Assembly: GCA_030704615.1 (NCBI GenBank) | Contig: CM060734.1 | Location: 5,890,001-5,954,000, forward strand | Direction: 5' to 3' | Origin: Takakia lepidozioides | Lineage: Eukaryota > Plantae > Bryophyta | DNA length: 64,000 bases | In this document: piece after piece, positions 6,038-46,620 of the stretch | Layout: each line of letters begins with the position of its first letter | Position numbering within the stretch: the first letter of the stretch is position 1 | Made by a program: the position numbers and the translations under genes | The notes under the pieces: model-generated | The model's database searches: none | What the model was told of the DNA's origin: nothing | What the model saw: only the letters and a program-made list of their open reading frames with translations

Positions 6038-8319
6038 TTATCCCTCCCCCTCTCAAAAAGTCGTGTCCTCACGGTTTACTATTTAGGATCAGCAAACCTT
6101 TGTGAACGAGCACCCTTCTGTCGATGAGAGTCCCTTGGCCTATATACTCGGGCATCCCCTTCCTTGCTACATGCAAATACTTCCAGCAATGCCGTCTTCC
6201 CAATTTGCAAATCGTAAAGTGGAAAAGAGGAAGCTACTACCATTGAACTACCACTTTATGAAACATGACTTTGCGTTATATATATTACCCAAAAATCCTG
6301 AAAGTCTTCTGCACAAAAACCTTCCAAATGTGATTGGCTTCAAAGTTGTGCCACGTCCACTGGCAGATTTTATGTGGCTTCCACCATAAACAACCTCTTC
6401 TGTGTAGGAAGTGCATTTATGTCCTGGAATACTAAAAAAGTCTCATACTTGTAGTGTACATTTGCATGCTTCATTCATAGTAATGTCCAGCATGTGCTTA
6501 CAGATGGAGATTTTGTAGGTGACGGGCGTTTCAGGAAGTGAGGGTGCAGGAGCTGGATGACGAAGGAGATCTTTGTTGGAATCGCCAGTGTGCTCGCCCG
6601 CAGGGATACACAGCGAATCCTCCTCGTCCTCTTCATCCACGTACTGGCGTGCCTCCGCGGCCATGGTTTCTAGCCTTCTGCTGCATCTAGGTGGAGCAAT
6701 GGGTAGTGGAGGTCGACGGCAAGTACGCTTAGGTTTGGGAGCAACAAGCCTGCAAGCCCGGCCCGATCAACAAGTTAACCAATCCCGCAAATTGCATGGT
6801 GCGCCATGAAAGTGTAGAAAGAGACGAACCCTTACAAACAAATTTCCCACTTAGCAACGCAATCCCAACACTGGGAATCCAGCTAAACCAGAAAACCCAA
6901 AAGACATGAAGGCGGGCATTTTCAGGCGAAACCATAAGCCCCTCACATTTTCAATAAAAACCCTAATGAGAAGCCCCTACAATTTTTTCTCTGACAACTG
7001 TAAACTAAAGTCCGGTCAGACGAGCACTCCGGTTGAGCACAAATGCTCTCCTGCGAGACAACGCCCACAACAATAGGGTGAGCCGCCCGTCACTGAACTC
7101 ACAGTGGGTGCGAACCAAACAACTCCGCCTCAACGTCCTTGTTGCGAGCAATGCAGCTCTCCCTTAGCTTTTCATACGCAGTTAGAGGACCGCACGGGGA
7201 GGGCCTGACCATGGTAGTCTAACATCACCTGGAAAGACCCTTGCATACCCCCTGTATAAGTACGATGTATATAGCGAGAGCGGGGTTTCGGGTGATGGCT
7301 CAACAACTTCGTCTACGCAGGAAAGATGACAAACTCTGGTGATTAGAGGAGGCGCAGGCCATTGCACATGGACAAAGCAAAATGTTGTGCAACTGCAGAG
7401 TCTGTCATGGAGGCATCCCGCAGTTTCTACACATGGCCAAAAAGCACCTTACGAAGTATGGCAGGGACCCTAACTTGCTGCACTGTACACTCCCGGTACG
7501 CCTTGCACAATGCATGCACTCTGACATGCTCGAAGCACGCCCGCGCATGTCTGTATGTTTTTGGCTATTTTCTGAATCCTTCTCCAGTCATGAGAATGAC
7601 TGGAGTTTGAATTACGTGTTGTTCTTCCGTTGGTTGTATTGGAGTCATGGAGTCCAAGTGATGGAGTCATGGAGTCGGGAGTGCCTCATAGTAGTCATGT
7701 CCATGACTTCATGACCGCGGATGATGGACATGTTAACTACGTGGCGTTCTTCCGTTGGTTGTACTGGAGTTTTGTAGTCGTAGTCATGAAGTGATGTAGT
7801 CGGGAATGCCTCTGAGGAGTAGTCAGGGCCATGACTACATGATCCCGGTTGATTGCCATGTGTCAAGCCTTCACGCATTTTGGGCTTTTGGTAGTTTGCT
7901 GCCATGTGTCATGCCTTAAACGCATTGCCCACTTGGGCATATTTGATGAGAGCTTTCACTTTGTCGGTATTTGTGTGTGTATTCTCACATAGTGTGTGTC
8001 GGGATGTCTTCCTCTATCACAGATGGTATGTTTGCTTTGTTTTTCGATCAAAACGGAGTTCCTAGAAAGCCCTATCATACATGTGTAGTTCTCATTCTTC
8101 TTTGTATGTGAGCTGCACAAGCTGCTTTGAAGTCAAGTCTGTGCTTCACAATGTCGTGTCCAGTTTCACAAGTGCGGGGGAGACTTGCAGCATTCACCTG
8201 TAGTGAACTAGCAAAATTGTTGAAAGTGTTTGCTTACAATACATGATTTAAAATAAATCTCAAAGTGTATGGGAGTTTTCAAATATGCGTCCTCATCAGA
8301 AGACAATTTGTGATGTGAT

Positions 8320-9810
8320 TTGAATTGGCAGGGCTACATTACATCCGATGATGAAGTGGAGGCTGAAACTAGTGGAGAGAATGTTGCTTACGATGACCAT
8401 TTCGAGGGAGAAGCAGGGAATGGGCTACGGGGCCAGATTGCCCGTGCTGTGCAAGATGCTTTTGAAATATCAGATAACCTCAGGCAAAATCCTACACCTG
8501 CCCCAAATGGCCCTCATAGAATGAGGATGGTGTTGAGAATGGTGAAAATCCCTCTGGAATGCATGATGGCGAAAATATCGGCAGAGAGGAAGCAAGCGCG
8601 CCAATGATTTTCACCATGAAAAACTCATGCGAGAGTCTCAAATCCTCTTATACAATGGGTGCAGTCACAACCATTTGACAGCCGCATTGGTGTTGCTCAA
8701 TTCGTGCGCCACTCAGAGATGTACTAACGCATTTGTGGATGAGTTATTTTCATTGTTGAGGCTGAAGATTTTGCCCAAACAGAACACCTTGCCAAATCGC
8801 ATTACGAGGCCAAAAATATGATCGTCATGATGGGCCTAGGATACTAACAGATCCATGCTTGTGAACGTGGATGTGTATTGTTTCGTGGAGAGCTCGAAAA
8901 GGCAACAATTTGCCAGAGTCCCCGATATTAAGGCGGCTGTGGAAAGGTGCCCAAGAAGGTGCTGCGACACTTTCCTCTCATACCTAGATTGAAACGGATG
9001 TTCTGAGCTAAGTCGCTCGCACAGCTGATGAAGTGGCACAGCAATCGCAGAAGTGCAGATGGCATGGTCCGACATGCTGCAGACACTAAGGCTTGGTGCC
9101 ATATTGACAACACATGATGGCCGGAGTTTGCATCAAATCCACGAAATCTGCGTCTTGGATTGGCGCTGGATGGGGTGAATCCTTATGGCACAAAATCCGC
9201 CTCTTGGTCCACGTAGCCCATCATGGTGCTCAATTATAATCTGCCTCCATGGTTGGTAACGAAGAATTTTTTTGTCATGTTAACACTCATGATTCCTGGA
9301 AAGGAATCTGTGACAAGTGAGAATCTGGATGTTTACCTTCAACCACTAGTGGAGGAGCTAGCGACGTTGTGGGTGGGAATTCCAGCCTTGGATGTGGCAG
9401 CCAATGAAGGACAACGGGCATTTACCATGCGGGCAGTCCTCATGTGGTCCATACATGACTTCCCCGCCTATGGCTTGCTATCAAGTCAGGTTCACCAAGG
9501 GTACATTGCTTGTCCAACATGTGGACCTCAAGTCAATTCCAGATATTCCCCAGCTTGTATTAAATTGATATTCCAGGGGCATCGACGATATCTTCCCCAC
9601 AATCATGCCTATAGAAGATCCAGACTTTTTAATGGGGTGCGAGACATGAGACCTGCTCCACATACAGTGATAGCCATCGAAATCATGGAGCGTGCAAGGC
9701 ATTACAAACAATGGATTGATGATGTTGGGACTGCAGGCGCATATGACGATCCCTCCAAGCTCCATGGCATAAAACGACTGTCCATTCTGTTTGACTTGCA
9801 TTATTGGGAG
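8320..9810 (+). mobile_element. CACTA/EnSpm Tnp2-family (Transposase_21) transposase pseudogene
   Basis: KVLRHFPLIPRLKRMF, FASNPRNLRLGLALDGVNP, YNLPPWL, LDVYLQPLVEELATLW, WSIHDFPAYG, YIACPTC, GHRRYLPHNHAYR. Several stops and frameshifts. Confidence 0.92.
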
Positions 9811-12407: not shown

Positions 12408-15400
12408 CTACATCCGTATGCTGGCAGTTTTGAAGCAGCCATCTTGGAAAGATTTTACTTTCCCTTTTGATACTCTCTTTTTCCGCTGCTCTTGAATTCG
12501 TGCCATATTATCTGCAGCGTCTGCTCGAACTTCTTCCAAGTGGAACAATTCGTGTTCCCTGACTTGTAGTGATTCCTCCAAACCCCATCGTTCACGAGTC
12601 GAGGTTCTTAATGTGGGTACCATACACTCAATTGGTAGTAGTGCTTCGACTCCATACACCAGTTGAAATGGTGTATGTTTCGTGGTCACCTTGTATGAGG
12701 TCCTAAATGCCCATAGTGCCGTATTCATCTTGGTATCCCAATCTGTGCGATTGGCATTTACTATCTTTGTCAAGATAGTGCATAATATTTTGTTTGTAGA
12801 TTCTACTTGGCCATTACCCTGAGGGTAATAAGCAGTACTCTTGTGATGCACAATCATGAATTCTTCCGTCAAGCATTTTATGGTATCATTCATAAAATGT
12901 GAACCTTGATCACTGACAAACTCCAGTGGGCAACCGAATCGTGTGATTATGTTCTCATATAAGAACTTGGTTGTTGACTTGGCAGTGTTGTCTCTTAATG
13001 CCTTGGCCTCTACCCACATGGTAGTGTAATCGGTGGCTGTGAGAATGTATTGGTTCTGTGTATATCTTGCTGGAGGTTTAATGGGTCCTACGAAGTCTAG
13101 CCCCCAACGCTGAAATGGCTCTGTTGGTAATATTGGGTGCATAGTTCCTTTCCCCGTTTTTTCTACTGGTCCCATCCTTTGGTAGACATCACACTTTTGA
13201 CAGTGTTCATATGTGTCTCCGAAAACAGTAGGCCACCAGTATCTGCTAATAATATCTTCTTTGCTGTCAGGTCTGCACTGAAGTGTCCTCCTGCAATTCC
13301 TTCATGTAACTCCTGCATCACTGTTTTGGCTTGTTCTTTGTTCACACATCTTCTCATTATGGAGTCAATTCCTCTTTTGTACATAATTCCTCTGATCACT
13401 GTGTATGGCTTGCTTTTCATTGAAAGTTTTCTCCTGTCATCTTTGGTGTAATCCTCAGGAAATTTTCCTGTGTTCAGATAGTACTTGATTGGCCATTGCC
13501 AATCATCTGGATCTTGATCTTGATCCTGGAAGTCTTCTGATTTTTCCTTGGTAACTGCATAAGCTCCAATGCTAATATTGGCCAATTCTTGATTATTTGG
13601 CTCCTCGTTTTCCTTGTCATCCTCTTCTTCTGGATCTGGCTCGTCTTCAATAAAAGGTCCTTCATCAAGAGGTTCGTCTTCATCTGATGAGTCCTCTTCT
13701 TCATCAGTTTCATCATCAGCTTAAGAGAGTCTGGTAGGTCATAGTCTCCTTGAAACACTCCCAGAGCGTCTAGAGGGTCTGTTTCTGTTTCTTGTGCTTC
13801 TGGTTGAACAGCAAACGGAAATGCATCGGGAAGTTGATCCTCTACTCCTGTTGCTGGTTCTCCAGTAGTACTTCTTGATAGATGATCTGCCGTAACATGT
13901 AATCTTCCAGGTTTATGAACAACTTCAAAATCATACTCATGAAGAAGTAATAACCATGGAGCAACCCTCCCACTAGCCAGTGGTCAATTTGCCAAATGAA
14001 CCAAAGCCTGATGATCCACAATAAATTTAAAACGATTGCCAAGTAAATAATGCCGAAACTTTTGAGCAACATAAATCATTGCCAATGCTTCCCTTTCCGT
14101 AGTGCTATAGTTTTTCTCCGCTGCTGTCAGTAATCTGCTTGCATAATAGATTGGTGAATCTATTGTGCCTGTCACATTCTGAGCCAGAACTGCCCCCAAA
14201 GCAATGCCTGATGCATCACTGTGTACATGAAATGGTAAATCTCATCTTGGATTTATTAGAATTGGTGCTGCTGTGAGTGCCCTTTTCAATGAATCAAATG
14301 ATTCCTGGCAAGCTGGAGACCATCGGTATTCGGCATCCTTCTACAACAGTCTATAGACTGGTGCCGCTCTGTGAGCATATTTGGCCATGTACCTTTTGTA
14401 ATAGCTTGTCTGTCCTAGAAATCTCTTGAGTTTCTTGGGATTTTCTGGTGGTGGTATAATCTGGATAACATCCACCTTCTTCGGATCTACCAAAATTCCC
14501 TGTTGGCACACAATGTGTCCCAACAGTAATCCTGAATTCACACAAAATGTACATTTTTCCGGGGAGACTTACTCCATTGTCTCTGCAGGCTTGTAGGAAA
14601 AGTTTTAACTGTGCCAAGTGTTTGGATTTCTGTCCGAAGACACTGAAATCATCCAAGAATACCTGCATAAGGTCATTGAGATAACTCTTGAATATCTCAG
14701 ATATTGCTCTCTGAAACGTGGCTGGTGCGTTGCAAAGTCCAAATGACATGACTTTGTAAGCGTAGTCTCCCCATTCAGTGATGAATGCGGTCTTTTCTCG
14801 GTCTTCTTTTGCCATCTGTACCTGATTATACCCACTGAATCCATCCATGAATGAGTACATCTCATGTCCCGCTACTATGTCTAACACTATCTCTGTGAAA
14901 GGCAGTGGAAAGGGGTATTTCTTGGTTCATGCATTTAATTTGCGGTAGTCCACACGTACTCGTAATTTACCATTATTCTTGGGTACTATCACAATGGGTG
15001 ACAACCATTGTGGTGTTTCTACTGGGTATATAAATCCTGCATCCAATAATTTCTTGATTTCTTCCCAAACCTTAGTTGCAATAGTTGGGGTTCATTCTGT
15101 AACGGTTCTGACGAACTGGTTTCGTGTCAACTTCCAATTCAATTTGGTGCTGACAGATGTTGGAAGGTATGCCCTTCAAATCTTTGTAGTTCCAAGTGAA
15201 TACATCCTTGTATTCAGTGAATAATGCAGTGGCTTCTTGTAGAAATGATTCTTCAAGACCTGCACTTACTCGTATTATCTGTGGTTCTGCCACTGTTCCG
15301 AGATTCACTTGAATCAATTGGGTTTCTTCCGTTACTGTCCATCCTGCAATCTCCTGTCCGATGGTTGCAATCATGGCAGGTACTTCACTGATGTTAATGT

Positions 15401-33339: not shown

Positions 33340-35934
33340 GTCCCAGAGCAGTCCATTTTGCAAGTGGAACTGCGATTTAACCCCCATCCTCAAGTCCCGC
33401 ATCACGGACTTTGTCATCTCATCCTTCCGGTAAGCCTTCCGGATCTTCCTTTGGAGCGCCGTCTCGCCCCTGTACACCAACATGAGCTGCTGCTTTCTAC
33501 TTAAAGCATCGGCCACCACATTATCCCGTCCCGGTTTGTACTGGATATCCACGTGGAACACTGCCAAAGTATCTTGCCACCTAAGTTGTTTTGGGGACAA
33601 CTTAGGCTGCGTGGCAAAATACTTCACCGTGACATTGTCCGTTAACACCTTCACCGGGTTGGAACCAACATAGTGGCGCCAAAGCTCAAGGCAATGCACC
33701 ACCGCCTTCATTTCCTTCTCATGCGTAGGCCACCGTCGCTCCACTTCATTCAGTTTCTTACTTTTGTAAGTCACTGGACGTCCATCCTGCATGATTACAC
33801 CCCCTATAGCGAAGTCCGACGCATCCGTATGAATCTCAAATGGACGGTTGAACTCCGGGATCTTGAGGACTGGAGCTTCCGCCATCCGCTGCTTTAACTC
33901 GGCAAAAGCTTGACCACAAAAGGTGTTCCATACCCAAACTTTGGATTTACACAGAAGGTCTGACAGTGGCCCCGCGATCTTGGCAAAATTTCTCACATAC
34001 TTCTGGTAATAAGAGACGAGTCCTAGTAAGGATCGCACTCCCGGGACCGAAGTCGGAGGCTCCCAGTCCAAGATCGCCCTCACCTTTTTGTCATCCATTT
34101 TGATCCCATTCTGTGTAATCACATGCCACAGGAACTCCACTTTTGTGACCCCGGATTCGCACTTTGAAGCTTTGGCATACAGCTTCCCTTCCCGCAATTT
34201 TTGGAACACCCTTTTGAGGTGTTTCAGGTGCTCTTCCTTTGTTTTCGAGTACACCAATATGTCGTCGATGTATACGATCACAAAATCATCCAACCTCTCC
34301 TGGAAAAGGCTGTTCATTAGCATGCTAAAGGTCGCGGGTGCGTTGGTGAGCCCAAAAGGCATCACCAAGAACTCATACGAACCATATCTTGTCCTGCACG
34401 CGGTCTTCTCCTCATCTTCTTCCGCCACTCGGATCTGATGATACCCGGAGCGCAAATCGATCCGGCTGAATACTTCGCTCCTACCAACCGATCGAAGAGG
34501 TCGTCGATCCTTGACAAAGGGTACCGGTTCTTGATAGTCACCTTATTCAGGGCCCTGTAATCTTCACACATCCGCAGCGTCCCATCCTTCTTGTCTGCGA
34601 ATAGCACCGGGGCTCCGTAAGGTGACTTACTCGGCCGGATGTACCCCTTTGACATTAAATCCTTGAGCTGAGCCTTCAGCTCGACCAACTCTCTGTGGCT
34701 CAACTGGTAGGACGCCTTGGTAGGCGGCTCCGATCCCGGTATCACCTCAATCTTGTGGTCAACTCCTCTTCACGGTGGCAAGCCGCTTGGTAAATCCTTC
34801 GGCATCACATCCTGGTATTTCTCCAAAATCCCCTTGATCCAATCTGGGCTCGGCTCCCCATCGCTTTCTCCCTTCACTTGTCTTACATAAAGCAAAAACT
34901 GGGGCTCGTGTGACTCCTCCACGGCCCACTCCTTTGCTGACAACAGGTTTATTCGCCCTCCCACTGGGTTGGGCGTTTCCGACACTCTTAAAACTTCGCC
35001 ACCATTCCCACACGGTAGCGTGACTATTCTCTTGCGGCCATCTATAACCGCTCCGGATTTGCTCAAAAAGGTCATCCCCAAAATGAGATCCACTCCATCG
35101 ATCTCGCAAATGGTGAAGTTCTCACGTCCCTCCCAACTCCCGAGCTGAAGAGGAACATCGAACGCCAACCTTGTCGCCAATTGTGGTTCTCCTTTGGCAG
35201 AACGCACCTCAATAGAGGTCCCTACATCACTTGTCAGGCGTCCCAGCTTCCGTGCCGTTGCCGATATCATGAAGGAGTGCGACGCTTCTGTGTCCACCAA
35301 CAACGACACGTTAGTTCCGGAAATTATCCCACTCACGAACAATAACTAACTCCATTTACGCAGGGCGTCAGTTTCTTGATACAACTCACAAGAGTAGTTG
35401 TCTACCTTGCAAGTCTTGGTGACCACCGCTTCCACTAAGCGGCTGATGGAATCTTCCGACAGCTCTGTAGTCGCCCGAGTCATGTTCAATTGTCGGGGTT
35501 TTGCGCACTTCTTAGCCATGTGCCCGGGCTCCCCGCAATTAAAACACACTCCATCGAAGGTCATCTTTTGTCCGCCATAAGCCGTCGCACCTGATTTTCC
35601 TTTCGGAGCACCGGGTGTCGTCTTGGCGTGTGAAGGCCCTCCCTTCGATTTCCACGTGTCATTGTCGCCGCGTGGCCTATCCTACTTCTTTTTTGGTAAA
35701 AAAGAGTCACTATCCCGCCGGATCTTCTTGTGGTTCAGCTCCGTATGGCCTTGTCTTTCTCCCCTAGGGACATCCGAGAAACATTCAGCCCTCTCAATTG
35801 CCTCGTTCAAAGTCTTAGATGGCTTCTCCTCCAACTTCCGCCTGGCCCATGGGGCCAGTCCCGCCACAAAGTTGAAGACCATTTCTGGTTCTGCCATGTC
35901 CGCGACTTCGAGCAACAGCACATTGAAAACCTGA
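33340..35934 (-). mobile_element. Ty3/gypsy chromovirus (Galadriel-like) gag C-term-PR-RT-RH, truncated at start of INT
   Basis: CFNCGEPGHMAKKC; LLVDTEASHSF; [45 protein letters not shown]; HTDASDFAIGG, ERRWPTHEKEM. Confidence 0.93.
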
Positions 35935-36236
35935 CCCGGGGGGTGCACTCTTTATAAACTGTGCGTATCACGTGCGTTCGTCGCCTAATAAAAAAACCCC
36001 CTGTATACGGGTCCTTGGATAATTTATACCCCCTCTGTACATACTTTTTGAAGATTATAAAATCCCCTCCTGTAAATATACAAAAATTTACAATTTTTGA
36101 AAAGTACCCCTTCTGTATGTATATTCTCATTTTTCATCATTAAAAATAACCCTCCAATATGTATATGTATGTTTTTATATTATATCGAATTTATTCATTT
36201 AAAACATAATAAAATCTAACAAATTAATTAAAAAAA

Positions 36237-39200
36237 TTATTTGCCTTTGATAAAGTTGTCAAAGACTTTTCGGTCATTTGCATCAAGAACATATGTGTTT
36301 GACTTGACATTGTACTTTAAACATGCTAACGCGATAATGGAATCCAAATCAACCATCATGTTATCCGTCAAATCGTACGTATAGACCCCTCCTCGAATTT
36401 TTTGGTACCATGCTAACCCAATCTCCATATGAGAAGGACGCTCCAATAAATCAACAGAATCCCTACATTCTACAAACCGCTTATTGATTTTCTTCCGCAT
36501 TCTTTGAACCCTGCCCAAATACCAAGTGCCTTTGGTTGCTCCTCTGCAGGTTTTCCCTGGTCTACCTTTCCTGTTTGTAGTTTGGATCGCAGTCTCCCAT
36601 CAACAAAAAATACAGCACAATCCGAACCCAATCCCAAGCTCGTGGCTTTGTTGCTGGTAGTTGGTTTGTTTTCTCGGCAAAACAACATCGATGCACTTCT
36701 TACTCGTGTCAATCTATCCTTGGATAGAGTAGGGTTGCCATTGAGTTGGCTAACCAAAGTGCTTTTGAATATGGTCTTCCCGTCTACTTTGACAAATGGA
36801 ACCACTGCCTTCGATCCATCTTTCTCTTGTTCAAACTCATCAATGACAGCATCCAGAGTATGTCTCAATTCACTTTGAACAAGTACCTCTTCCGCATGAT
36901 CATCCAAAGGTTGGCTCAAAACATCCTCCATTGAATTCGAAGGCCCGCACACCAATTCATCTTCCACGACCTCATTTTGAATATGTGTGTCTGCATTAAG
37001 AGGACAAATAGAATCTATGGCATGACATCATCACCCTCCTCTTCCATGCTTTTGAATAGCTCGACCTCCATTTGTCTCTCAATTGTCCATGGCTCATTCC
37101 ACCAATCCAAGTTTGTTGCTTTGTTTGGTTTCATCCCAAGTTTATGGCATAAAAGTTGCTTCTAGAAATCCAGTTTTCAAAGCCTCCACAATGCAATCAT
37201 CCGATTGGACAGTAGAAAAGTCGGACAAATCAGCAAGGGGGATACCTGGCTTCTTCTCCAAAGAAGACCATATGTGTTCTTGTTTCTTGTGAGCTCTTGA
37301 GAACTTGGGTCCTTTTGGATTCGCCTCGAACTCGGATATGCGTGTTAATGCTCCCGCACTCTCAATCAAATCACACCCGTCATATGTCCTCTCATTCCGT
37401 GACATACCTCCCACTTTGCTGAAGAATATTTCACACACATCTGAACCAACAAGGCTCAAAGGAACTTGCACATGATTAAACTTATCCTTGAACAATTTGA
37501 TAAGTAGAACCACGTAGTGGCATGAAATTTGTAAATCCAAGTATGCTTCCCTGCTAATGAAGAAGGATTTCAGATTATACACCTCGTGCTGGAATAGCCA
37601 CAACTTCCACAATCTGAAAAAAAAATGATACCTTCGCAGCAGATTGTACCCTCTCACACAATGACATGTGAGGAGAAAAAAAATGTCGATGTAGCATGAA
37701 ATGATGTATAGGTAAATTTCAGTACCTTTGGTCCTCTCTCTTCGATGATTCACAGTTGATTGTAACTCCCTCAAACAAGCTTGCACCTTCCGAGATGCCA
37801 GTCGTTGAGCTGCTGCCCAATTCTGTCGATCTTCTCTTTTGATATCACATTCCCGAAGTCCATGCTTGTCCACTGAAAATGAATGGTAGACCAATAACAC
37901 ATGATTCAATGTAGCAACCTCATCACCCAACACCAAAGTCCGTGATGCACTGTCCAAGGGATTTACCAATTTTTTCCCATTGTGGATGAAGTCCTGATCA
38001 TGGAGTCCGTATATATCTCCCCCGTTGCACACTCGACCTGTAAACAACCATCCTTCCCAAGGGATGCAAAATCTATTTCCAGCCCCATTGGCATAATCTT
38101 CTAACACTTTTCTCTCCTACTATCTCCGTCTGAAGCATGCCCAATTATAGGCCCAACCACGTCCCTCACATATTTGTCCCACAACTGTCTCACCACTTCC
38201 CATTGTGATCTCACAAAATTGTTGTCAAATCTATTGCAAGTGAGCTGGATTACCAATACCAATCGAGGTAACCGTACATGTAGAGGATTTGCTATCAACA
38301 CTCTAGCATAATGGGCAACCACATTGTTTTTGAATGCCTCCACAATATGTTTGTACCCTGATTCCCCTTCTCCCCTTGCACCACAAAATTTGAAATACAT
38401 ACATGGTTGTCTTGAAGCCCACAAAACCCGAGAAGGGTGTCATCCCTAGCAATCCAACGTACCAATCGCTTCACAACAGTTTCATCTTCGGCCACCATCA
38501 CTGGGATGCTTCCCAATGGAATATTTGCATCTTCCATCACATCTCTGTAAATTCCAGCCACATGCTGAAATATATCATCCGTTTCTCCCGCTCTATACTT
38601 CAAACCTTTCCTCAAAGACCGTCTTGTAGTATCAATAGAAGGACCCCCCACATTTGAAGCCAAAAATGATGCAATCTCGGACCCCCCCAAAGCTGCACAG
38701 TCTCAAACATTGTTTTTGTGCTAGTACCATACCTCTTCCCTTGTGGAGACCTGTCAATATTCTTGCCCATATCAACAAGAAAATCCCACAAACTTTCTTT
38801 TCCTTCAAAATCCCCCCTCCTATGTGCATCAACAATATCACGACAAAATTTGAGAACATCTCCTCTTCAATTGCCTCAATCCCAGACTCCTTCAAACTCC
38901 TACATCGCACAGACAATGATGCCACTTTGGTCCTGGCCTCCCACAATTTGAACCTCAACTGCCTCAACTCCTGTCTGTTTTTGTAAACTTGTTTGACAAT
39001 CTCCGCATTTCCAAGATATGACAACCTTCTTCCCTTGCCAGTATCTCTCTCCCCTCTACATTCCATGGCACCTCTTTCTATATACCCTCATTCTGAAGTC
39101 ATTTTCCAAGGGAATGGAAGAACATGCTGAACATCTCAAGTTTGAAATGGCTCCCCATCCAATGACACTCTAAAACAATCCGCGTGCCGAAACGTACCAA

Positions 39201-40640
39201 CAACCTTATGCTCTTGATTGTTTAGAGTGATGGTTGCATTTGTCAACGGCTCGACATACCACTTCTTTCCTCCCTTGCTATCTTGAAGGAATGGTTTCAG
39301 ACTTATTCTCTGCTGGTTGTACTCCCACCATTCATCCCATAGGCCCCAACACAAACTGTCTCTTCCTTTGTTGCATTGGGACCTTTGCTGTAATTGTCAA
39401 TCCTCGATCAGATCTCCCCGTTGGGCAGCGTCAACAAGCGTATGGAGTTTGTGACGAGGATGCTCCCATTGTTGATGCCACAATTGGATTGTCAAGTGGT
39501 GGGGACGGCAACACAGGTTGACTGACCAAGAAAGAGCTTAGATCCCGTTGCTTTACATCTTTGGCAATCATAGGCTTTGGAGGCCTTCCTCTCTTTTTGC
39601 AAGGTCCTTCACTACTTCCAACCTTCTGGCAAATCTCTGCATCGATGAGTTTTTCCTTTCACATGCTCTGTCAAAGAAGATTGCACCTGTCCTTGGAAAC
39701 AAGAGTAGCCACTTCGAATCCAGTGGGCACCTAATCCTTATGGAACCCAACTGCGAATAGTCTCCAATTGTGGCTTCCACAATCTCAAATCTGTTTCCAG
39801 GATTGTCCTCACAAAACCGAGCGACTTCCTCTAATGCCTCCTTCACCCTGTTCTTCTTTGCGTCTAATGCTTCATCTGCATTTACAGGGCTGATGACACA
39901 TTGTGATGAACCCTTCCCATGACGCCTCTCATAGGCTATGCGATGCCCCTCACTCCTCAAATGAGATCTCATAAAGTTTGCACATGCATCATATGGTTTG
40001 TTTTTCCCAGACCGTGCATAAACATCCTCACACTCAACACACCATATGTGGAACATTGCTTGTCCTTGTTGATCCTTTGTCATCAGCTCAAACTTGTCAC
40101 ATCGTCCTTCTGCAGAGATTTTCCTTTCAACGGCTCTAATCTCTTTCTGCCATTTTTGAATATCGTTGGATGTAGCCAACGTGCTGCACAATCTACCAGA
40201 TCTCTGCTGAAGTGCATCATGTGCATGGTCTTCATTTCCACCATCGCCAGCAAAGGGTGTATCAGGGTCCATCCTCATCTTGGTAGACACTGGTGCCGGG
40301 TCCTCGCCTGGTCTGTCCTCATGCAAGATCGTAGAACCACTGGAAGATAGAGGTCTTTTCAATCCTTGGTCCCCATCATTTTGGTCTGAAATCTTAATGT
40401 GTACAGTATCCCCTTTCAGAACCATCTCTCTCTTCTTGCTTGGCTGAAAGGACACTACCCCCCATGGAAAGGAAATGAAATTTTGCTGAGACAAGCTCAT
40501 CACCTATAATTTCTGCTCGGATGCATTTGTATGTGACACCTTGCATAGTGAACACAGAACCAAGCCTGTTTGGTGATGCATCTCCTCCAACAAGCAGGAC
40601 TTTTACTTCCAACTCTTCTTCCATGATGAGTTCACCTGCA
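36237..40640 (-). pseudogene. Large P-superfamily-like DDE transposase (frameshifted; probable further 5' exons to ~41600)
   Basis: VAEDETVVK (D1 ~38485), HASDGDSRR (D2 ~38129), QDFIHNGKKLVN (DxxH), DRQNWAAAQRLAS, SDVCEIFFSK (E ~37431); N-terminal CVEC...HLRSEGH finger. Confidence 0.75.
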
Positions 40641-41689
40641 AAATGCAATGAAAACATTTCAAATCAGACCTTGATAGACCAATAACAAAGCACCCGGGTT
40701 GGAAGGTTCCAAAGTCTGTTTTATACAACCCTATAGGCTGTCCAAGTAGGAACTACGTTCATAAGAGGATGAAATGTATACAGAAGCAAGTACCTGATTG
40801 ATGAGTTTGATGTTTTTTGCTGCTGCTATTGACCAAATGCTGCTACTTCCACTGCTGGTAGCCCTCTTGGGTGATCCTGAACCCACAGTCCATCCTTGCA
40901 TCAGCGGCTAGCCCTCCCTCCACACTAACATATTTAAATACAAAGTTCTGTCAAAACCCTACGATGTTGCATGAAGAAAGCTCACCTTGTTGACAATATT
41001 GTCCCACCGCTGTGGATCAAATTTATAGAACTCCTGCCAGCGCTTCCTTGCTCCAAATCTGGCCCTCTTGGATGATTTTGCACCCACGATCCTCTCCCTG
41101 CATCAACAGCTACCCCTCCCTCCACACTAACAATGCGTACATCATGCCTCTGCAGCTACTACTGTGGCTTCCAGTTGACCATCTACCCATCCAGGTTTCT
41201 TGTAGCTATCATTCACATGGAATCATAGGTAATCTGGAGCTTGGAATCCGCCATCTGGAAATCTAGGGACGACTCTGATAATAGGGAAAAACAGGCTGAA
41301 ATGTGTTGAAGAAGGTACCTTCATTAGCAGTCCCTTGTTCTATCTATTATCTTTTTTTAGGTACTGTCATGCTACCACCTCGGCAGCAACTTGCAAAGTC
41401 ACTCCAGAGCACCGCAGATCCACCCAACGAGCTAACTTACAGAATTCAATACATATGCTTCAGGGCTGAGTCTGATGAGAGGGAAAAACAGGCTGAAACA
41501 GGTCAAACCAGAAGGTGCCCTCAGGCTGAAATACGTTGAAGAAGGTACCTTTCATCAGCAGTGCCTTGCTTTATCAATTGCGCTTGCCGCTGCTGTTTCC
41601 AGTTGACCATCCACCCACATTGTCCCACCATTGACTGGGGTCAGAAAAGTGTCTCATTCCAAAGCTTCTCTTCATCTCTGTGGTGCTAT

Positions 41690-42312
41690 TGTAGGGTGAC
41701 TTCAATGCCCAAGTGGGCAAAGGGCTCCATCAGGACGATATCATTGGGTCTTCTGGTGAGGACGAGCTGAATTCTAATGGCAGACGGTTAATTAACTGTC
41801 TGGAAGAGCTTCAGCTTTTGACCTTGATTAACAAGACAAGAGGTGACCAAGTGCAGTGGACTCGTGAGAAATCCCAAACTGGGGAACGTTCCATTGTGGA
41901 CTATCATAATGGACAAAAATTTGTTCCCCCAGTGTGCCAATGTGTTGATCGACAGAACTGATATTGGTACCTCTGACCACTTTGGACTGAGATCAAAAGG
42001 TGTTTTCCCAAGGCCAGAGTAGAAGAGATTCTCAAGGACCTGGACCTGGATCCGCAAGTTGACCCTGCTGGATAAATCAGACTTAGAGGCTGTAGTGTCC
42101 AAAGCCATGTCTATTGCCATGAGATTGTCTGATGAAAATGAAGTTAGGCATAAAACTTCCCTGAACTTGTTTCTAGTCAGTGACATGGGGGAGGACATCT
42201 TGGATGACCTCAAGGGTCCACCCACTCTCGGCACTAGACTGAAATTTAAACTCAGGGAAGGAAGCCTACCTTTGAACATGAAACAGAAGCAGAGAGGAAA
42301 GGGGGAGTGCAC
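41690..42312 (+). mobile_element. Internally deleted RTEX-like LINE fragment nested in the P-like element
   Basis: GDFNAQVG...GEDELNSNGRRL...SIVDY...GTSDH endonuclease part fused to the C-terminal LGTRLKFKLREG region. Confidence 0.8.
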
Positions 42313-42854
42313 TCTCCCAAGTGAACCTGCATCATTCAGTTGGCAAGACCGTGTCTGAAAAATTGATCCATTTGAAGACACCACGGTGCAGCTGAGCACA
42401 GCCTGACATGACAACAATTAACATCATACTGAGACAAGAGAAGCAGTCAAGGACACAGTCATGCATATGGCAGCAAGTGATCACCCTTCAAACATGATTG
42501 AAAACATACATGAGGTCAAAGGCAATAAGAAATCAGCGAAGGGTACTGCAGCTAACAGTTGGAGTGTCTTTAAAGACAAAGGGAAGAGAAAGAAACACTT
42601 CACTGGCAATGAGGGGAGGCTGTGGAAACGCCAAGAGGATGGCACAAATGATAGAAATAACAGGGCTGGGCAAAGGATCCTGCAGGAAGAAGAAAGGGTA
42701 TGTCAGCATGGAAAGGACGTGCGGCTCATTCCAACAGAAAGGGGAACATTCGTGCAGTTAAGTACAACAACCAATTGCCCTTCAATTATGGCTGGAATTT
42801 TCCAAAAGGCGAGGGATGATAAGGATGAGATGTACTCATAAGACGTTGTTTGCC

Positions 42855-45330
42855 GTAGCCTTGTGGCCATTGACCCCGCGCCCAGTTTCAGTGGGAACAA
42901 AAGGAACAGGGCTGACGTTGGTAGTAAGACTTACCATCGTATAAGGAATTAATCCGGGTTTTCCAGATATCCTCTAGAAAACCCTTCACACAAGCATCAA
43001 TCTGCTGTGTGTGATTTGCCCAAAAACTAGGCCTCAGGAGGGCCTGGGCTTTTGGCTCAGCCTCGAGACTTTCAAAGTTGGTAAACAGGGGTACAGGCAC
43101 AATTCCCTTGATAGAATTGAAGAGAGCCTCTCTTTGGTGAGAGAACCCGGACAGCGTATCAGAAAATGAATACTGTCTTCAGATTGCCCACACAACGGAC
43201 AATTGCACTCTCCCTTTCCTCTCTGCTTCTGTTTGCTGTTCAAAGGTAGGCTTCCTGCCTGAGTTTAAATTTCAGTCTAGTGCCGAGAGTGGGTAGACCC
43301 TTGAGGTCATCCAAGATGTCCACCCCCATGTCACTGACTGGAAACAAGTTCAGGGAAGTTCTCTGCCTAACTTCATTTTCATCAGACAATCTCATGGCAA
43401 CAGACATGGCCTCAGACACTACAGCCTCTAAGGCAGATTTATCCAGCAGGGTCAAGACTTGCGGATCCAGGTCCAGGTCCTTGAGAATCTTTTTCTACTC
43501 TCTTCTGCCAGGACTTAGCCTGTTTGACAGGGCGGTCCTGTTTCCAAGATATAGAGTCAATCAACTTAGGATATCTGGTGTTGGGCATATGTTGCAGCTG
43601 ACCCCACCATCTGACCTTGAATTCATCTCGTCGGGAGCTTAAGGATGGAATGCCAAACTCACCCCGAACAGCCACATTGGCTGTTTTGGAGCATGCTGAC
43701 ATACACTCCTTAAGCACCCCCACTTGAATGGATTCTAGAGACTTAGCCTGGTTGGAGTTATCAACCCATATAGCAGATCCGTACTCCAAGGCAGGTCTAA
43801 TAACGCGACAAAGCATGGTTTTCTTAACCTCAGAGATGACCCCTCTGCAGTGGAAAAATTTAGTGAGCCCCAGAGCTTTGCCCTTGCCAGTTCGAACAAC
43901 TTTCCGGATATGTGCATCCCAATTACAATTGGAGGAAAACTCAACGCCCAGGTAAGTGTAGGAAGGGAGGACCGGGATCTCTTGGCTACCCCACTGCCAC
44001 TTAAGATCACTTCCTCCCTCTCCTCTGTCGTTGAATGCTACCACTGCACATTTGCTGACATTAGCCTCTAGCCCCAAAGATCAAAGTATCTCTTCGCGCA
44101 ATTAATCAACTCCTGAGTGTGATGCCACGGTAGTTCCCCGGTTCTTCTCTGTCACCCTTCTTGTATAGACTGACAATGACCCCCTGTCGCCAGCGAAAGG
44201 GGATCATTTCAGTCTTCCAGATAAGGTTAAAGAGGAGAACTAGGGCCTCTATCATGGGATCGCCACCGTGCTTGATAAGCTCGTTGACAATACCATCAGG
44301 TCCACCAGCTTTATATCCATTTAAATGTTCAATTGCTTCCACAATCTCAGAAGAACTAATGGGAGCGTTATAAGCCATTGAAATATACTCCAGTTCATCA
44401 GGGCTGTTTTGAATCATAGGAACAAATTTTCCAACTGTGTCCCTCCATTCAGCAGAAGACCCCTCACTGTTAGACCTAGAAGTTCTGCCAAGGATACTGT
44501 AGTGATTTTCAAAGGTTTTGACAATGTCAACCGATGAAGTCACCACTGCACCTTTAGTAGTCTTCAGCGCTTGTACTTGCTGACCGTTTTTAGGCTTGTA
44601 CAAACGTTGAAGGGCCAACCATAATTTCTTGTCATTACCACCATGGTGGTTTGAGTTTATTTCACTGTAACTTATCCCAGTATAATTTCTTCTGAGACCT
44701 AACAAGCTGATTGATATCTTTCCGGAGCTGATAGTACCTCGCCCACAATTCTCTGTTGGTTTTCAAATTGCAGCACTCTTTATAGAGGGCTCGTCCTCAC
44801 CAAAAGGCCCAATGATATCGTCCTGATGGAGCCCTTTGCCCACCCGGGCATTGAAGTCACCCAATAGCACTACCTGACCTTTGGCAAGGAACGAAGCACA
44901 GTCCAGCTTTACATCTTCGAAGGCTTTGTCTGCGTCAGCACTAAGGGTCCCCTCTGTGGGCATGTAAACACAACCCACAAAGAGGTCCTTCGTACTCATG
45001 CCGCCCTTCAGATTCAGTTTTAGCCAGATACTATGTTCGTACCTCAAACCCTTGTTGATAATTTCACAATTATCAAACAAGAAATCACGGACAAAGAATC
45101 CAACCCCTTTTTGACCGTTTGGCAGAGGCTGCCTTGAGAGTACACATCCTACCTGCCCATTTATAACCATTGACATCTCCAACCAGTTTATCCGAAGTTT
45201 CCCATGTTTCTTGCCCAGCACAGATATGAATATCATTAGTCCGAAGGACTTGTCCCACTTCGAGTTGTTTCCTTTGGTTAGTAAGCCCTGAGAAGTTGAA
45301 AGTGGCCAGCCGCAAGCCAGCCCTTTGCAT
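42855..45330 (-). mobile_element. RTEX-like non-LTR retrotransposon ORF2, internally deleted, nested in the P-like element
   Basis: APE (LATFNFSGL, GQETW, VLLGDFNARVG); RT N-term (KAGGPDGI, YKKGDREEPGNYRGITL); RT core missing; thumb (YTYLGV, RPALEYGSAIW, NVAVRGEFG); CPLC...H...C finger. Clade is inferred. Confidence 0.85.
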
Positions 45331-46620
45331 GTGAATTGTTTTCGTCTAGGTAGCTTGGGATTGCTCCTGGACGCCCAAACCGTTCTGCAAAGGGGGGACA
45401 GTTACCCCATGTGTAGATTTTGCTCGTCTTGTGTAAACTCTTGAGTACCAAATCCTTCAGATTCAGGACGTTCAGGTTCTGTACACTTAGGGGCATCTTG
45501 TCCCTCTGGCTGTTTGGATTCAATAAGGATGAGAATAGGCCTGATACAGTGAGTACAACCATTGTGTCACGCCAATCATTATTAGGAAAGAAAATAGGCC
45601 TAATGTGCTCATTACCTCTGATGACTGGGAATCTTGATGCCCATGTCCTCCTGTCATTGCTGCACAACAATCCGCCACCACACCCGCATATCATCACCGA
45701 TCAGCCCAGGCCTGCCCCACATTCCCGCGCACTTACTTCATCCCCTTCGATTCCTGCCCTCTACATACATCACAACCTCAAACCTTCTCCCAAGTCAGTG
45801 CCCTCACCACATTCTGGTGCCCTCACCACATTGTCCTACCATGCCCTGTGGAGAGGAGGGGAGAGGAGAGGAGGAAAAAGAGAAAGCCCGCGGAAGGGAA
45901 GGCGAACGCGGGAGAGGAGGAGAAAGAAAAGAGAAAGCCGCGGGAGGTCAGGGGAGAAAGATCGTGGAGCGAAAAAAAAAAAAAAAAAAAAAAACATACA
46001 AAACGACGATTCCACGATTCGATCCCGGGATGCATCGCGGCGGAATCGCCATTCTTACCACTACACTATCCCTAAAAACTCAACAACCCCCTCCTGTAAA
46101 ATATATTTAAGGTGTTTTAAACCCCCTCTGTATGTATAATGTTGTACATGGGGGGGTTTAAAATACCCCCTCCTGTGCACGCACGTGGCTGGTACATTTA
46201 ATGAGGAGTGCACCCCTCGGGGCTCAAAGATCTTATGGGATAAGAGGAAAAAAGAAACAAGAAAGAGAGGGGGTCACAAAGCTCATGGCATGCTAAGACC
46301 ATGCTGACACAGAAGGGGTGCGGGGGAGGAGGGAAAAAAGAGCCCGCGGGAGACAGATCGCGGGGAGAAAAGAAAAAAAAGAAAAGCAAAAAAACATTGC
46401 ATCGCAATTTGATCCCGTGATGTGTCACGCCACATTCTACGCCCTTACCACTAGACTACTCCTAAAACTTAGTAACCTCCTCCTGTAAGATTATATTTAA
46501 GGTGATATAAACCCCCCTCTATATGTATAATGTTGTACATGGAGGGGTTTAAAATACCCCCTCCTGTGCATGCACGTGGCTGGTACATATTGGCTGGAGT
46601 GCACCCCCCGGGAAACCTGA

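Follow-up and report, generated by a model that had tools for sequence, protein, structure and literature searches.

A cut-and-paste DNA transposon in the genome of Takakia lepidozioides, in all likelihood a deep relative of the P-element superfamily

In this study, we describe a 10.7-kb element in the genome of the bryophyte Takakia lepidozioides, located at positions 35935-46612 of a stretch of 64 kb (assembly GCA_030704615.1, contig CM060734.1, positions 5,890,001 to 5,954,000; the whole stretch is hereafter the window, and coordinates refer to it unless another contig is named). We conclude that the element is, in all likelihood, a cut-and-paste DNA transposon forming a deep branch related to the P-element superfamily. 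The features on which this conclusion is built were observed directly: the ends of the element, its target-site duplication, the retrotransposon gag gene that it splits, the fold and the catalytic motifs of its transposase, and the conservation of that transposase in liverworts and a fern. The element appears to carry a single minus-strand gene, with an intron in the 5' untranslated region (UTR), that would encode a transposase of ~1470 residues.

Element ends and insertion site

The element is bounded by 16-bp terminal inverted repeats, CCCGGGGGGTGCACTC, on the left at 35935-35950 (plus strand; the 3' end in the sense of the gene) and on the right at 46597-46612 (minus strand; the 5' end), which are complementary at 16/16 positions with 0 mismatches. 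Allowing up to 3 mismatches, the 64-kb window holds 4 matches to this 16-mer against 0.41 expected by chance. Immediately outside the repeats stands an 8-bp target-site duplication, AAACCTGA, whose left (35927-35934) and right (46613-46620) copies are identical. In silico removal of the element together with one copy of the duplication gave a single continuous minus-strand frame of 155 residues over the junction, the right part of which matches the Pfam family Retrotrans_gag (PF03732) with 25.1 bits (cut-off 24.1). The ends, the exact duplication and the rejoined frame together indicate a cut-and-paste type insertion into a retrotransposon gag gene, which the element splits cleanly. An earlier note, made from the sequence alone, had reported the perfect repeats, the exact duplication and the split gag, and each of these was reproduced here. 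Its description of the element as structurally complete holds for the ends and the duplication, which are intact, and has to be qualified for the rest, where we find fragments of a long interspersed nuclear element (LINE), a duplicated right end and frameshifts that are possibly assembly artefacts.

Inside the repeats, the two subterminal regions carry short motifs of the kind bound by transposases. The left region (35951-36236) is AT-rich and contains CCCCTCCTGTA-type motifs (36064-36074, 36107-36117) and an ACGTGCG motif. At up to 1 mismatch, CCCCTCCTGTA occurs 6 times in the window, where 0.9 occurrences are expected, and all 6 lie on the plus strand and within about 180 bp of a copy of the terminal 16-mer, either at the two ends or at an internal right end. 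The sites (36064-36117, 46088-46177 and 46477-46568) have the same orientation at both ends and are not inverted, so that the two ends of the element are asymmetric. The right subterminal region (45830-46596) consists of two tandem copies of ~390 bp (45830-46221 and 46222-46612), spaced 390-391 bp apart and 72-92% identical. The inner unit ends in an extra, near-perfect terminus at 46206-46221, which differs from the 16-mer at 1 position; no matching duplication adjoins it.

There are some observations on further copies. A contig from another sample (run X6) has the reverse complement of the left end fused directly to internal position 36408, which points to a family member that was rearranged or had inserted into itself. 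In run X1 the summed contig depth at the left terminus (36000-36163) was ~3x that of the gene body; extra short non-autonomous copies with the same ends could produce this, contig depth being a poor measure. Metagenome contigs yielded six matches to an end of the CCCGGGGGGTGCACTC type, which we take as chance matches, probably bacterial: 5/6 lie in contigs of 57-71% G+C, and 0/6 show element sequence beyond the pattern itself.

Structural relationship to the P transposase

The open reading frame (ORF) pieces of the window were searched and folded separately, and no joined or repaired protein entered the searches or the folding. The fold of the family was modelled from a full-length relative, P0061 (predicted local distance difference test, pLDDT, 85; folded with 64 sequences), and its top match among solved structures was the Drosophila P transposase 6P5A (Foldseek E 4.7e-8, TM 0.66 by target). 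By VIA-align the two superimpose with a Z of 23.3 and a root-mean-square deviation (rmsd) of 5.1 over 416/442 residues, covering chain 128-565, and the runners-up were Transib (10.7), RAG1 (9.5) and Hermes (8.3). The same relationship is seen in the window itself: its own 321-residue piece (pLDDT 90.7, folded with 61 sequences) matches 6P5A with Z 14.5 and rmsd 3.9 over 238 residues of chain 308-565, that is, the GTP-binding insertion domain and the segment with the catalytic glutamate, and its next-best fold match, RAG1, reached Z 6.0. The earlier note's suggestion of a P-related lineage is borne out by fold, the top match being Drosophila P and not hAT, MuDR, Kolobok or KDZ.

Several of the features that define P transposases are present in the family. 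The RNase H-like D,D,E core is represented by its motifs in the window, and the modelled core aligns to 6P5A; the window piece shows the alpha-helical insertion (P GTP-binding type) that P enzymes have between beta5 and alpha4; and the helix-turn-helix (HTH) of the superfamily is indicated by a Pfam PF12017 match in the relative P0138 (23.7 bits, cut-off 23), by a model that aligns from residue 128 of 6P5A, and by the window, which spans that profile region. The 8-bp duplication was found in two elements, the one in the window (AAACCTGA) and one in the liverwort Calypogeia fissa (TGTACAAG). Drosophila P transposase (6P5A/6PE2) and THAP9 have in common with the family an HTH ahead of a D,D,E core of RNase H type, which a large alpha-helical insertion domain interrupts between the second D and the E, and a D-x-x-E at the catalytic glutamate; the element is like the Drosophila P element in that its target duplication is 8 bp long, its terminal inverted repeats are short and motifs of a binding type lie subterminally. 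The differences are nevertheless considerable. Identity to the Drosophila enzyme is 13-15% only, with no significant sequence or Pfam catalytic-domain match; the fly protein has a THAP domain where the window protein has CxxC...H-x5-H fingers and an AT-hook; the window protein has ~500 extra N-terminal residues and a C-terminal BAH-like barrel; and the ends of the element start CCCGGG, whereas those of Drosophila P start CATG. The catalytic residues of the fly enzyme are D230, D303 and E531, and the first two acidic residues, 73 residues apart there, are ~120 apart in this family.

It could be argued that an 8-bp duplication points instead to the hAT superfamily, a common plant family with duplications of that length and a BED-type zinc finger, and the CxxC...H-x5-H spacing of the N-terminal finger is indeed BED-like. 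As in the present family, the enzymes of Hermes and Ac carry a zinc finger at the N-terminus and have an RNase H core interrupted by an insertion domain. However, the fold match to Hermes is far weaker (Z 8.0-8.3, rmsd 8-9, vs 23.3 for P), no hAT structure is among the top matches of the window's own piece, neither the hAT dimerisation domain (PF05699) nor zf-BED gave a Pfam match in any piece or relative, and the end sequences differ. We therefore regard a hAT element as very unlikely.

Predicted structures point in the same direction. The neighbours of the family in the ESM Atlas (features 0.89-0.95; shape TM 0.5-0.8) are TNP-like/THAP9 clusters together with unannotated fungal clusters, and the ten best named neighbours are TNP-like in 10/10 cases. 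The closest predicted structures of all belong to unannotated P-like clusters from Basidiomycota, rotifers, diatoms and Parabasalia (TM 0.68-0.80 by row; feature scores 0.91-0.95), in which Pfam TNP-like domains occur in a minority of members; their hosts differ from those of the present family, and the likeness is one of models and features.

A CACTA/KDZ (Zisupton-like) or Kolobok element has also to be considered, since the DxxH motif is carried by those enzymes too: DxxHxxK occurs in CACTA-type transposases, and Zisupton makes 8-bp duplications. Yet no Pfam match to the KDZ or Tnp2 families was found, the ten best named Atlas neighbours are all TNP-like, as stated above, and the 8-bp, non-TTAA duplications of the window and of Calypogeia fit neither Kolobok, which duplicates TTAA, nor CACTA, which duplicates 3 bp. 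Of the explanations weighed here this is the one to which we give the least credence, marginally less than to hAT.

Relatives and the Calypogeia element

At E<=1e-3, an exhaustive phmmer search with the 321-residue piece returned 1203 relatives, of which many measure 1000-1120 residues. Those with a named host belong to two liverworts (Calypogeia fissa, Riccia sorocarpa), a fern (Adiantum nelumboides) and a cnidarian (Clytia); many others lie in assemblies that carry no label, Tara Oceans contigs among them. We built a maximum-likelihood tree of the core from 59 rows, leaving out two short Adiantum fragments; the window row of the local alignment and tree was three window pieces joined with X. 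Here the window sequence belongs to a clade (support 1.0) that includes proteins of Calypogeia, Riccia and Adiantum and whose named members are all land plants.

The Calypogeia fissa element (L011:5750-15856; 10,107 bp) independently supports both the 8-bp duplication and the functional nature of the ends; the earlier note had named duplications of that length in other copies as a check. Its ends, CCCTGGGCCCTCACTC and CTCTAGGCCCTCACTC, agree at 14/16 positions and are related to those of the window; it has the exact 8-bp duplication TGTACAAG; and its gene is intronless and intact, with 1529 residues. The subterminal motifs CACTCTTyATAAA, ACGTGCG and CCCCCTGT are common to the Calypogeia and window elements, the proteins of which are only ~44% identical. 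The contigs of other relatives showed no recognisable ends in L001 (the closest relative), L010 or L009.

The flanks of these two elements have one short sequence in common. The exact 17-mer GCCATGTCCGCGACTTC, which in the window codes for EVADMA of the gag gene, stands at 35893-35909 of the window, 25 bp outside the left end of the element, and again at L011:15864-15880 in Calypogeia, where it begins on the last base of the right target duplication (blastn of the flanks, window vs Calypogeia, E 7e-5). Apart from this 17-nt match, the flanks of the Calypogeia element have no gag similarity. It is possible that the shared sequence reflects a target preference, the number of insertions being two. 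A variant of the 17-mer with 3 mismatches occurs at 7694-7710 of the window, probably within another copy of the same retrotransposon family.

The transposase gene and its domains

The coding region of the transposase occupies 36237-40624 on the minus strand, from an ATG at 40624-40622 to a stop at 36237-36239, and comprises about 1460-1470 codons. It is split into ~9 frames in the assembly; aligned to a profile of 979 positions that was made from full-length relatives, the minus-strand pieces cover positions 44-971 in order. Public contigs of the same species, from two studies, show almost no substitutions over the coding stretch, and differ from the window by small insertions at 36597, 37023, 37157, 38374, 38865, 39076, 39433 and 40216 and a 1-nt deletion at 40427. 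Applied locally, ten read-supported indels gave ORFs of 365, 186, 200 and 627 residues; this count used ten listed contig differences of 27 and served for the ORF lengths alone. Many missing letters with few substitutions fit either indel errors of the assembly or reads from intact sister copies. The frameshifts of the window copy may be assembly errors or private decay, and under either explanation it is very probable that the genome contains a long open frame. Upstream of the start codon, a stretch of 158 nt (40636-40793) is missing from one contig of a run taken by guess to be RNA, which we interpret as a GT..AG intron in the 5' UTR (minus strand; GT at 40793-40792, AG at 40637-40636, with a pyrimidine-rich acceptor), exon 1 lying at 40794 and upstream. 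This splice in the 5' UTR places the start codon at 40624.

All domains are encoded on the minus strand. The N-terminal extension of ~500 extra residues (39143-40624) is particular to the liverwort-type proteins and holds a CxxC-x22-H-x5-H finger (CVEC...SHLRSEGH; 39943-40041), a second Cys-rich stretch (~39718-39738) and the AT-hook RGRPPKP (39572-39592). The finger aligns with residues ~210-252 of the Calypogeia protein P0265, and P0244 has the second finger and a GRPRK hook in common with the window protein. The extension has no Pfam match, and its 311-residue piece found no homologue in the length range searched (longer proteins were outside that range). It is followed by a Cys/His module, a long helix and an HTH region (38663-39142), the module motifs CWGLW (39337-39351) and FRHADC (39175-39192) lying just upstream of that interval; a Cys/His module (CWGLW...TCxxC), a long helix and an HTH precede the core in all family members.

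The N-terminal half of the RNase H-like core (38107-38693) carries two acidic motifs, AEDET first (38478-38492) and then SDGDSRR (38113-38133); D292/E293 and D412/D414 in P0061 numbering are invariant or nearly so. The alpha-helical insertion domain, which has the fold of the P GTP-binding domain, and the last part of the core (together 37142-38107) carry DQDFIHNGKK (37970-37999), DRQNW (37817-37831) and the D-x-x-E within GSDVCEIFFS (37418-37447). Among 21 full-length relatives, (A)EDET, SDGDsRRR, DQDyIHNxKKL and GxDxCExxFS are invariant or nearly so, and every motif listed in the earlier note was found in the window. At the catalytic glutamate, the D-x-x-E is spaced as are D528, which contacts GTP, and E531 of the Drosophila enzyme, and the D-x-x-N of DRQN could mirror fly D444/N447 (PMC7776569).

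The C-terminal extension (36243-36877; profile positions 778-971) is predicted to form a beta-barrel resembling BAH or Tudor chromatin-reader domains. Residues 880-988 of the P0061 model match the BAH domains of EBS, SHL, DNMT1 and ZMET2 with Z 7-8, and the C-terminus of P0072, a marine relative, carries a Tudor domain of the PTM/DIR17 type (E 9.7e-10). We consider a BAH-like identity of the barrel suggestive and not established. The non-THAP N-terminus with its C2H2-like finger and the long extra C-terminus, both noticed earlier from the sequence, are genuine and conserved.

Position within the P superfamily

Several points weigh against a relationship to P. The Pfam catalytic models PF21787, PF21788 and PF21789 stay below threshold in every member tested and match nothing in the window pieces or the liverwort proteins; the best of these matches was PF21787 in the fern protein P0052 (E 0.0022, 18.7 bits, cut-off 24.6). 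Profile searches of the PDB sequences with two family alignments did not retrieve 6P5A even at E<=10, and a Pfam scan of the nine window ORF pieces gave no relevant match at all. Pfam scans of the window pieces and of relatives gave no THAP (C2CH) domain, and the element ends start CCC and not CA. The length of the duplication is known from two elements, one per species, and the RNA support for the gene is a single contig from a run whose RNA status is guessed. By fold the insertion domain is of the P GTP-binding type, and GTP binding and GTP use are putative. The CACTA, KDZ and Kolobok enzymes are without a solved structure and are not covered by the fold comparison. Lastly, there is Novosib, a superfamily with 8-bp duplications that is found mainly in the plant lineage and could be compared by description only.

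An alternative reading is a separate superfamily, either Novosib or an unnamed one, which would have an ancient P-like fold and an 8-bp duplication and would lie outside P as databases define it. Novosib elements resemble the present family in making 8-bp duplications. They are like it also in their plant-lineage hosts, Archaeplastida being their main host (bioRxiv 10.1101/2021.09.26.461848). The absence of a sequence-level link to fly P, the failure of the Pfam catalytic models in all members, and N- and C-terminal domains unlike those of P all speak for this explanation. Against it stand the Z of 23.3 across the whole of the resolved fly enzyme, with the same order of HTH, RNase H, insertion domain and RNase H, the member that does reach Pfam PF12017, and the nearest ESM Atlas clusters, which grade into annotated P/THAP9 clusters. 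Moreover, a survey of 1007 plant genomes that had its own Novosib profile reported none (PMC12973397). We consider a separate superfamily unlikely, though it deserves more weight than hAT or CACTA/KDZ/Kolobok.

A deep branch related to the P superfamily thus remains our interpretation. The HTH model PF12017 has weaker matches in 2 further members of the 21, in addition to P0138. With the Pfam catalytic models below threshold, membership rests on the fold, the architecture and the length of the duplication; and as the link to P is visible by fold and marginal Pfam matches alone, the family is a deep relative and not a typical member. To this extent the earlier proposal of a P-related lineage stands through the fold match, and it has to be narrowed for want of a significant Pfam catalytic match. 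The THAP domain is confined to animals (review, PMC7776569), and it therefore cannot define the non-animal members of P.

Proposed mechanism

The order of domains from the N- to the C-terminus would be zinc-finger/AT-hook modules, long helix, HTH, split RNase H-like D,D,E core and BAH-like barrel, and this order is compatible with transposition in the following manner. Firstly, the N-terminal finger/AT-hook modules and the HTH would attach to the 16-bp ends and, subterminally, to the CCCCTCCTGTA and ACGTGCG motifs, and the transposase would pair the two ends of the element. Secondly, the D,D,E site would excise the element and join it to target strands staggered by 8 bp, repair of which would leave the 8-bp duplication. 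In the P superfamily, staggered donor cleavage leaves 17-nt 3' extensions. Assignment of DNA binding to these modules, GTP use, chromatin targeting by the C-terminus and activity at the present day are what we infer for the family.

A more specific and tentative proposal is that the element belongs to an undescribed land-plant P-related clade that is still intact and transcribed, in which THAP has been replaced by zinc-finger/AT-hook modules and a BAH-like reader has been gained, and in which the reader or a sequence preference may steer insertion. This goes considerably further than the relationship to P, and we regard it as possible and not as the likelier outcome.

Significance for plant transposon surveys

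P elements are a classic model for the study of transposition, and reviews treat them as in essence a family of animals. A 2025 survey used Pfam profiles to look for P in 1007 plant genomes and reported seven superfamilies, all other than P (PMC12973397); the failure of Pfam models seen in the present family would explain a miss of P in such a screen. P-MITE mentions P-type MITEs (miniature inverted-repeat transposable elements) in 'lower plants' only (PMC3964958). In the literature we found no P-like elements of bryophytes or ferns and no description of P-type autonomous elements in land plants, Repbase and Dfam being outside the scope of this search. In the same literature P is missing among the terminal-inverted-repeat superfamilies of land plants, which agrees with the earlier view of a lineage poorly described there. 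We see in the family a deep lineage related to P but unlike it in the DNA-binding and C-terminal modules, and one that standard domain searches miss.

A P-fold family with 8-bp duplications in liverworts and ferns extends the host range of the superfamily to land plants, and plant transposon surveys that are based on Pfam miss the whole lineage. It also allows a natural test of the question whether the unusual GTP-dependent mechanism predates animals. An intact copy would be a candidate for a plant-native cut-and-paste tool, and insertion guided by chromatin is a testable idea suggested by the BAH-like tail.

Other parts of the element and of related loci

Between the gene and the right end lie direct repeats and LINE fragments. 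The upstream non-coding region (40794-41693) contains two pairs of direct repeats of ~200 bp (40861-41132 and 41265-41551), which have no counterpart in the Calypogeia element. It is followed at 41694-45330 by fragments of a LINE (a non-long-terminal-repeat retrotransposon), with the main copy on the minus strand at ~43204-45330 and a partial inverted duplicate at 41694-42311. An ORF at 44106-44705 matches residues 375-535 of LINE-1 ORF2p (E 1.4e-8), and the region has a weak Exo_endo_phos match (E 0.054). The inverted pairs are 42059-42256/43258-43455 (94%) and 41694-41767/44789-44862 (95%); the inverted duplication extends over 42023-42311 vs 43204-43493, with ~0.9 kb of other sequence between the copies. 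When the window was compared with the Calypogeia element, nothing beyond the transposase gene was common to both as cargo and the LINE region was absent from Calypogeia; the LINE fragments are therefore not a conserved part of the element.

The loci of some relatives are organised differently. In Riccia sorocarpa (L012), arrays of the palindrome GGGAGCGGGACGTTCAGTCCCGCTCCC stand on both sides of the homologue (8979-9060 and 12853-13522), an end structure unlike that of the window and Calypogeia elements. Marine relatives on L002 (a Tara Oceans contig) and L009 have 1119-1123 residues and lie downstream of other long ORFs. These upstream ORFs were considered as a counterpart of the N-terminus of the window protein and rejected, being unrelated to it in sequence; the upstream ORF of one marine relative has a weak match to dual-specificity phosphatases.

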